Source: Ramazzottius varieornatus
Lineage: Eukaryota; Animalia; Tardigrada
Assembly: GCA_001949185.1 (NCBI GenBank)
Contig: BDGG01000009.1
Coordinates: forward strand, 1,353,624-1,417,623
Length of the DNA: 64,000 nt
Direction: 5' to 3'
The translations under genes and the position numbers were made by a program. Under the pieces are notes generated by a model. It was not told the DNA's origin. It worked only from the letters and a program-made list of their open reading frames with translations, and did no database searches. Shown here piece after piece: positions 53,751-56,484 of this stretch (its first letter is position 1; every line of letters starts with the position of its first letter).

Positions 53751-56484
53751 ATAGACATCTTGTCGTCGTTTCTGGTGCTCTTCTTAATTGGGATTCTTAT
53801 GACGGTGAGGCCTCTGCCTGTTGAGACACCACAGCCTGGGCTCCCAAAAACCAGAGCAGCTCCGCAACAGCAACGGCGACAAGAGGCATCACAAGGACCA
53901 CAGGGAAAGGGCACACCGGAGGAAAAGCCGCCATGGGTCAACCAGCCCTCCCATCAACAACAGCGACAAGAAGCTCTTTTACAACAGCAGCCAGCTCAAG
54001 GCAGCTTGCTTCAATCAGGGTCCCAGGGAGTCGAGATCTTCCGCGATGACTTGGATGGAGCCAAGATGGACCCCGACAAATGGATCGCCGCCGATGTGGC
54101 TAGCACGGTCAACCCGGAGATGGAGTACTACGCTGCCGATAACGTCATCATCAAGGATGGGACAATGATGCTGACAAGGGGTTTACGCCAGTCTGTCCAC
54201 TCTAATCTTCTAACAAATCCGACAGAAAGATAGAGGAGAGTTTGCTCCACACACTGAGATCCACACACTGAGATCCACACACTGAGATCCACACACTGAG
54301 ATTCGGCAGGATGGCTCATCCGGGATGTCTGCCGGGAGTTCCCTGCCCGGACTATTGGGCTCCTGCTATTATTTTGGTACGCAAGATGGGCGCTCTTGGT
54401 GACCAGTGCTAATATTGATGTAATACGCGTTCTACATCTTTTGTCCAGGTGGAAACAAGAAATAATGCCCCCACGGAGACTGTATCAACTAATATATTTG
54501 TAAAGGATAAGGGTCCGCAGATTTTGTCGACGACAACGAAGAATGCCGACATGACCGCCGATTTTCATATCTACAAAATGTCCTGGTCGCAAGAAAGGAT
54601 AGTATGGTACATTGACGTTAGACAAATTCGCGTCGTCAACGAGTCGGAAGAATTAAGTCGCTCACCAGAGGATGAAGGTGATCATGAACCTGGCCGTGCT
54701 GGCAGAAGTGGAGAAGGCCCAACCCCACTCCCGCACCAGCCTACTTCATTTTGGTACGTAAGATTGTGGCTCTCTCCATACTGCCAAAATAAATTTCGGC
54801 GTTTTTTGAATTAGTTTTGACGCCTTTATAGGACTATGTTGTAGTGAGACAAAAGGATGAACAAGCGTTTGAAGTGGCTAACGGGGAGAAGTCGAGATGC
54901 ACAAGTTGGTGGGTCCGCTTGTTGCTACTATCCTAGGACTCCTGCTGATCTCGCTGCTGGCGCTGTACATATTCATCAAACGCCGGCGATACCAGAGAAT
55001 GCTCGGCAATATGAAACGCCATTCAGAGTTTTCGTGCAACTCGGACTTACCCTTGTACTGCAAGACGAGTGGCACTAAATATGACGGGCTTATGACGAAA
55101 TACTGCAAGATGCTGCAGATACCTCCGGACAAGCTACAAATAAGTATGCATAGAGCTTGGAGACCACGAAAGTGGCACATGCGATACCTTTGATTGGCCT
55201 TGTTGTAATTACAGGCCAGAAGGTTCTGGGTAAGGGAGAGTTTGGTATTGTGTACAAAGAGAAAGCCCAGGACCTACCTGGACACCCAGGTATCACTGTG
55301 GTAGCGGTCAAGACCTTACACCATATGGACGATGCAGAAGCTCAACAACAGTTGGCCCAAGAAATACGGGTCATGACCAAGGTGGGGCAACATTTGAACA
55401 TCGTAAACCTCCTTGCTACTGTCACCAAAGGTGAGCATTATCTAAACCTCAATAAGGTTTATATATTGCTTCCTGTTATTCAACAAACTACCTTTACGAC
55501 TTTCTCTGTCACGATGGGGTGAGTACAAAATGAATGGGCTGTTATACTGACTTGCTTTCAGATAGACCCTTTTTGCTGATGGAATACTGCCGACTGGGTT
55601 CGCTGTTGTCCTACGTCAAGAGACATCGAGGACCTTACTACTACAATCAGGTGGACAAAGACGGAAGTATGTCCTCCTTCGACCCTGCTGCTTTGGAGGT
55701 CGTAAGGCAGAAGATTGACCTTTCGCAGATGGCGCTGCCAGTTAAATGGATGCCGCCGGAAGCTTTGCTGACAAAAACCTTATCGCAAAAGTCCGATGTA
55801 TGGTCCTATGGAATGTTACTGGGGGAAATGTTCAGTCTGGGACTGACGCCTTATATGGACTCGGCGGCTACGTTAATGACTTTATATGCTGGCTGACCGA
55901 TGGACATAACTTAGAACGACTTATGTTTTGCCCCATCGAAGTGTAAGCAGAAGGCATCTTCCCTTTCCGCTGCAGTTTATTGCTTATTATTTCCTTATTG
56001 TTGTAGATACGAGATGATGGAAGATTGCTGGAGTTTGACGGCCAGCGAGCGACCAACGTTCGCGCAACTCCGACAAAGACTGGATGTAAAGGTGAGCAAA
56101 GAATCGTCGGACACATACCTGACACTGGATGTCCTCTACATGAAATTCAACCAGGATTACCAGAATATGCTGCAAAGCATGGCAAAAGTAGGAGCCGCCC
56201 TACCAGCGTCCGACGAGGCGGGCGAAGACGCTGGACAGGAAAGCGAGGCCGACGCGGTAGCTGATGAAGAGACAGTCGGGCGGCAAGAAGGGAGTGAGGT
56301 CGTTACTGATGATCATGCGGACGAAGGCGTCGAGCTTTCCGACGAGGAAGCAGATGACCTTGCGGAGGATAAGGATGAGAGGAGCGACGCACAACCCGCC
56401 GCCAGGCAGCCCAGTACTAATGGGGAAAGTTCCAGCGAGTTCCATCCGCAGAAGTCTTCCAGTCAGTCTTCTAGGGAGAGCTGA
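53751..56484 (+). pseudogene. Decayed receptor tyrosine kinase: signal-like segment, Q-rich spacer, non-catalytic GH16 (beta-1,3-glucanase fold) ectodomain, TM helix, PDGFR/VEGFR/FGFR-like kinase, acidic tail
   Basis: GH16 motifs: IFRDDLDG..MDPDKW, NPEMEYYAADNVIIKDG, YWAPAIILVE, DFHIYKMSWSQERIVWYID, VIMNLAV, PAYFILDYVVVRQ. TM: LVATILGLLLISLLALYIFI then KRRR. Kinase: [47 protein letters not shown]. At least three frameshifts (about 54655, 54720, 54895). The HRD/DFG segment and central GH16 strands are missing. Confidence 0.78.
54246..54301. repeat. 14-bp tandem repeat (TCCACACACTGAGA)x4
   Basis: Four perfect copies just before the acceptor at 54308-54309 inside the GH16-RTK locus. Confidence 0.97.

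Follow-up and report, generated by a model that had tools for sequence, protein, structure and literature searches.

Positions 53718-56484 on the forward strand of the window, that is, the whole 64,000-nucleotide stretch of Ramazzottius varieornatus DNA analyzed here (on contig C9), very probably hold a unitary pseudogene, the decayed seventh R. varieornatus member of a family of type-I receptor tyrosine kinases (RTKs) found in tardigrades. We hold, jointly with the pseudogene reading and with the same high confidence, that the ectodomain in this family is built of GH16 domains of laminarinase fold, one or two in number and catalytically dead. The family of GH16-RTKs is real, apparently undescribed, and so far known from tardigrades only. 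Its intact members follow a common plan, with a signal peptide, one or more GH16-like domains, a single transmembrane (TM) helix with a basic stop-transfer sequence, a juxtamembrane segment, a split tyrosine kinase, and a tail carrying a conserved Tyr-rich motif.

A first-pass annotation of this DNA had placed at 53751-56484 a leader, GH16 motifs, a TM helix with a KRRR stop-transfer, and a tyrosine kinase, in receptor order on the forward strand, and all of these elements are indeed present. Its proposal that the copy comes from a lineage-specific receptor family is sustained, with GH16, TM helix, and split kinase joined in the paralogs, whereas the window copy itself, being a pseudogene, has no capacity to signal. 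The claim of novelty also stands, as full-text literature searches found no paper describing a GH16-RTK or a tardigrade family of such receptors; the proteins are already in public databases, as hypothetical or mis-named models only.

Intact relatives in the R. varieornatus genome

The R. varieornatus genome (55.8 Mb, 200 contigs) was searched with PF00722, with pieces of the window copy, with the paralog RvY_06820, and with a tardigrade GH16 profile. Results showed six other loci in which GH16, TM helix, and kinase lie on one strand and in receptor order, two of them on contig C3, one on C6, one on C11, and two on C19 (Table 1), so that the paralogs anticipated by the first-pass annotation do exist. 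The corresponding protein models are RvY_06820 and RvY_06815 for the C3 genes and RvY_15311 and RvY_15312 for C11.

At the two C3 loci and at C6, the leader, GH16, TM helix, stop-transfer, and juxtamembrane segment are all encoded in a single open exon (600, 677, and 422 residues), and the kinase exon begins a few tens of bases downstream of it. The kinases of these genes carry HRDLAARN or HRDIAARN, DFG, and PIRWMSP, and both the HRD loop and DFG are kept throughout the C3, C6, C11, and C19 paralogs. RvY_06820, a protein of 947 residues, matched PF00722 over two stretches (82.6 bits) and PF07714 with an E-value of 6.9e-73; its leader and TM helix are both intact, as are those of the C6 gene. 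When the two C3 genes were compared with each other, identity was 55% in the ectodomain and 77% in the kinase. This faster divergence of the ectodomain, together with the decayed copies, would fit a birth-and-death family.

Several of these loci have features of their own. The C11 locus has a GH16-GH16-TM-kinase arrangement (C11:1714500-1721500, 2266-4874 (+)) that the annotation divides between two genes, RvY_15311 and RvY_15312. Here the reading frame is broken within the TM helix and the Gly loop is weakened (LGRSEHG), so that the locus may be a second decaying member. The forward-strand receptor of C19 (C19:255500-263000, 3189-4601) has about 400 extracellular residues from GH16 to TM helix without a Pfam match, and the minus-strand GH16-RTK of the same contig lies tail to tail with it. 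At C6, a 115-residue Cys-rich open reading frame with its own leader (C6:1793500-1800500, 2038-2385 (+)) is found tens of bases upstream of the receptor and gave no Pfam match at E <= 0.01. Moreover, C5:1744500-1752500 holds GH16-like domains in tandem, without a kinase within 8 kb, and C1:5747500-5755500 has GH16 fragments in three frames with stop codons; therefore, the GH16-like family extends beyond the receptors and includes further decayed members.

GH16-RTKs in other tardigrades

With the RvY_06820 ectodomain as query, HMMER gave 1556 matches in an exhaustive search of 1.84 billion representative proteins, and the presence of a kinase among the best 150 of these was scored by phmmer with a paralog kinase domain. 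All the kinase-bearing proteins among these best 150 of 1556 matches belong to R. varieornatus or to Paramacrobiotus metropolitanus. Public models joining PF00722 and PF07714 with a TM helix between them, of the kind that the first-pass annotation proposed to look for, are thus found in two tardigrade species. Seven P. metropolitanus loci with GH16 and kinase were among the best 150 of 1556 matches and an eighth came from a separate search, giving at least eight, and in all eight a TM helix lies between GH16 and kinase. In RefSeq, these proteins are named FGFR3-like, PDGFR-beta-like, Kit-like, Ror-like, or uncharacterized. Hypsibius exemplaris has two models with GH16 and a TM helix (BV898_16719 and BV898_16720) and one with tandem GH16 (BV898_04404), and none of these models contains a kinase.

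The P. metropolitanus receptors also bear on the unity of the window copy. P0064, P0046, and P0029/P0156 are the best matches of its GH16 side and of its kinase and tail side alike, and P0044 and P0055 are the best matches of its kinase. As the same receptors match both halves, the two halves of the window copy descend from one gene.

Structure of the window copy

We compared the window copy with its intact relatives piece by piece and exon by exon (Table 1). The Pfam scores of its GH16 and kinase pieces are far beyond chance: PF00722 matched window:54449-54811 with an E-value of 1.2e-11 (44.8 bits versus a cut-off of 22), while PF07714 matched window:55157-55519 (E 2.4e-12) and window:55534-55893 (E 4.5e-18).

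The first frame is open from 53718. The hydrophobic leader, SSFLVLFLIGIL, from 53760, is similar to that of the C6 paralog, and ATA (53751) and ATC (53757) stand at the place where the Met of the C6 leader would be expected, the first ATG being found only at 53805, past the hydrophobic core. Of the features of a type-I membrane receptor, the window copy thus shows the leader, though without an in-frame ATG, and the TM helix and KRRR together at 54906-54989. A Q/P-rich linker of about 70 residues follows the leader. The first GH16 strand, VEIFRDD, can be read from 54030 and corresponds to where the GH16 domain begins in the paralogs; as a whole, the N-terminal GH16 strands align to residues 29-77 of the paralog P0001 as well as to further GH16 domains of tardigrades.

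Between 54180 and 54310, the GH16 core has lost about 45 residues, as revealed by the alignment and by a gap in tblastn, and a perfect 14-nucleotide tandem repeat occupies that spot. The lost strands correspond to the YTSGR..GKFxFxYGEVExRAKLP..G..W region, which all relatives have, and with these residues absent no complete beta-jelly-roll fold is found in the window copy. A possible in-phase intron, 54191-54309, would span the repeat.

Read row by row, exon 2, GCLPGVPCPDYWAPAIIL, plus the VE of exon 3 aligned to QCPPATPCTTWPPEIDVME of a stand-alone GH16 enzyme encoded on contig C8 (see below). In this catalytic strand the window copy reads A-I-I-L-V-E where the C8 enzyme reads E-I-D-V-M-E, meaning that Glu is changed to Ala and Asp to Ile while the last Glu is kept, and the motif E-x-D-x-x-E is absent. 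An intron at the position of 54754-54831 is absent from the paralogs of C3 and C6 and from the C8 enzyme.

The kinase half is recognizable over most of its length. Identity to the same region of P. metropolitanus P0046 is 29% for the TM and juxtamembrane segments, while the kinase N-lobe exon is 51-54% identical to P0055, P0044, P0046, and P0002, and the last exon 36-43% identical to the tails of P0029, P0046, and P0002. The Gly loop, the VAVK lysine, and the alpha-C Glu expected of a tyrosine kinase are present in the window copy; the HRDLAARN catalytic loop and DFG are absent from it. An in-frame deletion near 55699-55705 has removed about 80 residues comprising alpha-E, HRDLAARN, and DFG, leaving residues 712-792 of P0001 without counterpart. 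The PF07714 profile was matched to about position 76 and resumed from 162, and the stretch between is therefore without a strong match.

Table 1. Pieces of the window copy (window coordinates) and the other R. varieornatus GH16-RTK loci (contig coordinates).
Feature	Coordinates	Strand	Evidence
Exon-1 relic: leader without in-frame ATG, Q/P-rich linker, first GH16 strands	53718..54190	+	
14-nt tandem repeat TCCACACACTGAGA, perfect, 4.1 copies	54246..54302	.	TRF
Exon 2: Cys loop and dead catalytic strand WAPAIIL	54310..54376	+	alignment; weak BLAST matches to P. metropolitanus GH16
Intron, 72 nt, in phase	54377..54448	+	GT..AG
Exon 3: C-terminal GH16 half (DFHIYKMSW, WYID, MKVIMNLAV, PAPAYFIL)	54449..54753	+	PF00722, three-frame reading, tblastn to P0001, P0003
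Intron, 78 nt, in phase	54754..54831	+	GT..AG
Last GH16 strand DYVVVRQ and linker	54832..54896	+	tblastn, three-frame reading
TM helix (54906-54977), KRRR stop-transfer (54978-54989), juxtamembrane segment	54897..55143	+	sequence; weak TM_ErbB1 match
Intron, joins TM exon to kinase N-lobe exon in phase	55144-55214	+	GT..AG
Kinase N-lobe exon: GKGEFG Gly loop, VVAVKTL lysine, QEIRV alpha-C Glu	55215..55430	+	PF07714
Intron, in phase	55431-55561	+	GT..AG
Kinase hinge, start of insert, then end of activation segment and DVWSYG	55562..55857	+	alignment to P0001, Pfam
C-lobe piece, readable only past a one-base frameshift at about 55858	55858..55942	+	three-frame reading, BLAST
Intron, in phase	55943-56006	+	GT..AG
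Last exon: kinase end (MEDCW, RPTF), tail motif YLTLDVLYMKFN, acidic tail, stop (56482-56484)	56007..56484	+	
GH16-RTK locus	C3:1118010-1120944	+	genome searches
GH16-RTK locus	C3:1133825-1130716	-	genome searches
GH16-RTK locus	C6:1795989-1798473	+	genome searches
GH16-RTK locus	C11:1716855-1719370	+	genome searches
GH16-RTK locus	C19:257846-261752	+	genome searches
GH16-RTK locus	C19:265829-262552	-	genome searches

Lesions of the window copy and alternative explanations

Four frameshifts interrupt the window copy, near 54660, near 54695, at about 54885-54900, and at about 55858, and with these and no start codon there is no continuous start-to-stop open reading frame over the in-phase exons. 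The two frameshifts of exon 3 are flanked directly by conserved segments (WYIDVRQIRVV / MKVIMNLAV / PAPAYFIL), the third is found between DYVVVRQ with its linker and the TM helix, and the fourth between GLTPY and GGYVNDFI. Because each of them sits between adjacent conserved segments, no intron could remove them; the breaks cannot be explained by mis-read splicing either, considering that each of the five clear introns has GT..AG ends and keeps the phase.

Some observations weigh against the pseudogene reading or limit it. Open stretches of 120-157 residues persist in the pieces of the window copy, which suggests that the decay is fairly recent, or else that some of the locus may remain in use. 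The lesions were read from the assembled sequence, in which indel errors may be present, and the relic may be transcribed. As for the intact family, its ligand and signaling are wholly inferred.

It is very unlikely that the window copy is a working kinase-dead (pseudokinase) GH16 receptor or a decoy, with frameshifts that stem from faulty assembly or that the mRNA bypasses. Every piece does keep long open stretches, the five introns have canonical in-phase splice sites, and the possible intron 54191-54309 would skip the tandem repeat. Nevertheless, this explanation has to face four independent frameshifts between neighboring conserved segments, a leader without ATG, and the loss of about 45 residues of the beta-sandwich core, which should block folding, while it would be unusual for an assembly of 200 contigs to contain four indel errors in 2.7 kb. 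Even less probable is that the locus yields truncated products only, namely a secreted N-terminal GH16 fragment and a separate TM/dead-kinase protein starting from the ATG at 54897. This ATG is directly ahead of the TM helix, and the frame that it opens continues across two in-phase introns to a stop at 55894; however, it may be there by chance, and the N-terminal piece lacks a leader start codon and half of its fold. Finally, the idea that a GH16 remnant and an unrelated kinase remnant are adjacent through chance or misassembly, favored only by the decayed state of both halves, is rejected as having next to no probability, since six other loci show the parts in this order and on one strand, a single open exon runs from leader to juxtamembrane segment at three of them, both halves best match the same P. 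metropolitanus GH16-RTKs, and splicing between the TM and kinase exons is in phase.

Regarding the surroundings of the pseudogene, a Vta1/LIP5 gene is found downstream of it at window 57060-58212 (+) (Pfam Vta1 E 2e-16, Vta1_C E 2.5e-14), so that the setting of the relic is an ordinary gene-dense stretch, not a receptor cluster. An Rfam scan of window 52000-58000 gave no match.

Fold, catalytic residues, and origin of the GH16 domain

The AlphaFold2 model of the RvY_06820 ectodomain consists of two beta-sandwiches (pLDDT 77.8, pTM 0.66), and its top Foldseek matches are the laminarinases 4dfs, 4crq, 2hyk, and 3azx, with TM-scores of 0.7-0.76 by target. In sequence, the same ectodomain was aligned to bacterial and archaeal laminarinases, and its domain 1 reads R-M-Y-I-V-E where the Thermotoga laminarinase has E-I-D-I-M-E.

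The GH16 domains of 15 tardigrade receptor modules were set against 60 GH16 enzymes of bacteria, one alignment column at a time, using the numbering of RvY_06820 domain 1 or alignment columns. Results showed that residues of the fold are largely kept in the receptor domains: W195 and V257 are found in all 15, H189 and D205 in 14, G99 in 13, F35 and R104 in 12, and E102 in 11. For the catalytic residues, the nucleophile Glu is kept in 2 of the 15 domains, the acid/base Glu in 3, and the catalytic Asp in none. The cleft has changed as well, the His of column 346 being kept in 0/15 domains, the first Trp of WPAxW (column 279) in 2/15, and the second (column 283) in 4/15.

R. varieornatus also has a stand-alone secreted GH16 gene with an intron (C8:273000-280000, minus strand 4201-3233), which keeps EIDVME intact and has all the catalytic residues. 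This C8 gene encodes a probable active laminarinase of bacterial type and likely represents the kind of ancestor from which the receptor ectodomains would derive.

Concerning the origin of the module, a FastTree analysis of 217 GH16 domains (metazoan GH16 not included) placed 24 of the 31 tardigrade rows in one clade with a local support of 95, apart from the bacterial enzymes. The nearest named non-tardigrade relatives of a tardigrade GH16 protein, among its best 120 matches, are bacterial (33-37% identity). No named metazoan GNBP or betaGRP was found among these best 120 matches, and an Atlas look-up agrees. A non-metazoan origin of the GH16 module by horizontal transfer may be considered as a lead only. 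The best non-tardigrade matches of the ectodomain, from metagenomes (P0009, P0011-P0013, and P0016-P0019), are bacterial-type multidomain proteins; they contain two or three tandem GH16 domains, with ExDxxE intact in all.

Comparison with known receptors and enzymes

The usual ectodomain modules of RTKs (Ig, FN3, EGF, cadherin, LRR) are tuned to protein ligands. On the kinase side, GH16-RTKs resemble class III/IV/V RTKs, with which they share the type-I topology and a kinase with insert, HRDLAARN, and DFG. The best solved-structure relatives of the paralog kinase are Kit, PDGFR, VEGFR, FGFR, CSF1R, and FLT3 (E about 1e-61 to 1e-55), and the split-type kinase described in the first-pass annotation is confirmed by the intact members, which are closest to Kit, PDGFR-alpha, VEGFR, CSF1R, FLT3, and FGFR. 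On the contrary, the ectodomains of class III/IV/V RTKs are Ig-like repeats for protein growth factors, whereas here we find one or two GH16 beta-sandwiches.

On the ectodomain side, the bacterial and archaeal GH16 laminarinases (Thermotoga 3azx/4dfs, Zobellia 4crq/4bow) share the fold and are the closest sequences outside tardigrades, and tandem GH16 pairs occur among the bacterial relatives too. The difference lies in ExDxxE, WPAxW, and the cleft His, which are conserved in the enzymes but not in the tardigrade receptor domains.

betaGRP/GNBP proteins are secreted, bind beta-1,3-glucan by an N-terminal CBM39 and not by their GH16-like domain, and act through serine-protease cascades. What the tardigrade proteins have in common with betaGRP/GNBP/LGBP is a GH16-like domain without catalytic residues, in a protein serving recognition rather than hydrolysis. 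They differ in that the tardigrade GH16 is joined to a TM helix and a tyrosine kinase and is thus membrane-anchored, with no CBM39 match; in a Pfam scan of the window pieces, P0001, P0003, and P0055, only GH16 and kinase families were found and no CBM39. Membership of the betaGRP/GNBP group was consequently rejected, considering the missing CBM39, the membrane anchor, and the bacterial-type GH16.

Other systems are comparable by design only. The plant LysM-RLKs, lectin-RLKs, and the chitinase-related CHRK1 of tobacco are Ser/Thr kinases of the IRAK/Pelle group with LysM, legume-lectin, or GH18 modules. They follow the same logic, as an extracellular carbohydrate-related module is coupled directly to an intracellular kinase, but their kinases are Ser/Thr-specific, their modules are others, and they share no common ancestry with GH16-RTKs. 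Dectin-1, the vertebrate beta-glucan receptor, has a C-type lectin fold and type-II topology, and with no kinase of its own recruits Syk via a hemITAM. It resembles the proposed tardigrade receptors in coupling glucan recognition to tyrosine phosphorylation, which is a functional analogy only, and it differs in fold, in topology, and in relying on a kinase that is not its own.

Possible function of the intact receptors

By analogy with general RTK biology, the remodelled GH16 cleft, or a site nearby, would bind an extracellular ligand, either a glycan or a protein. Ligand binding would then drive receptor dimerisation, and dimerisation would lead to trans-autophosphorylation of the kinase.

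The first-pass annotation had proposed that these receptors sense glucans. Glucan sensing by GH16-RTKs is only a hypothesis, because the catalytic Asp and the cleft His are missing from 15/15 receptor GH16 domains and both Glu residues nearly always. By ancestry, a beta-glucan-like ligand is plausible for the predicted receptors; this option is weakened by the loss of conserved cleft residues and by the precedent of betaGRP/GNBP, where CBM39 rather than the GH16-like domain binds the glucan.

A survey of tardigrade immune genes detected no GNBP1/3 or PGRP-SA/SD homologs in any sample and reported that canonical NF-kB pathways are lacking in tardigrades (Mapalo et al. 2020, PMC7056985). As neither GNBP/PGRP-SA homologs nor canonical NF-kB were detected, GH16-RTKs become candidates for the sensing of microbes, fungi, or algal food. 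We consider it rather doubtful that the intact GH16-RTKs are tardigrade-specific glycan or pattern-recognition receptors, with a sensor domesticated from a bacterial-type laminarinase, possibly after an ancient horizontal transfer; if true, the recognition of microbial or food cell walls would be linked directly to tyrosine-kinase signaling.

In conclusion, the window copy is relevant solely in marking the turnover of the family, while the family to which it very probably belonged, with a dead glycoside-hydrolase fold mounted on a tyrosine kinase, would represent a new RTK ectodomain solution in animals.

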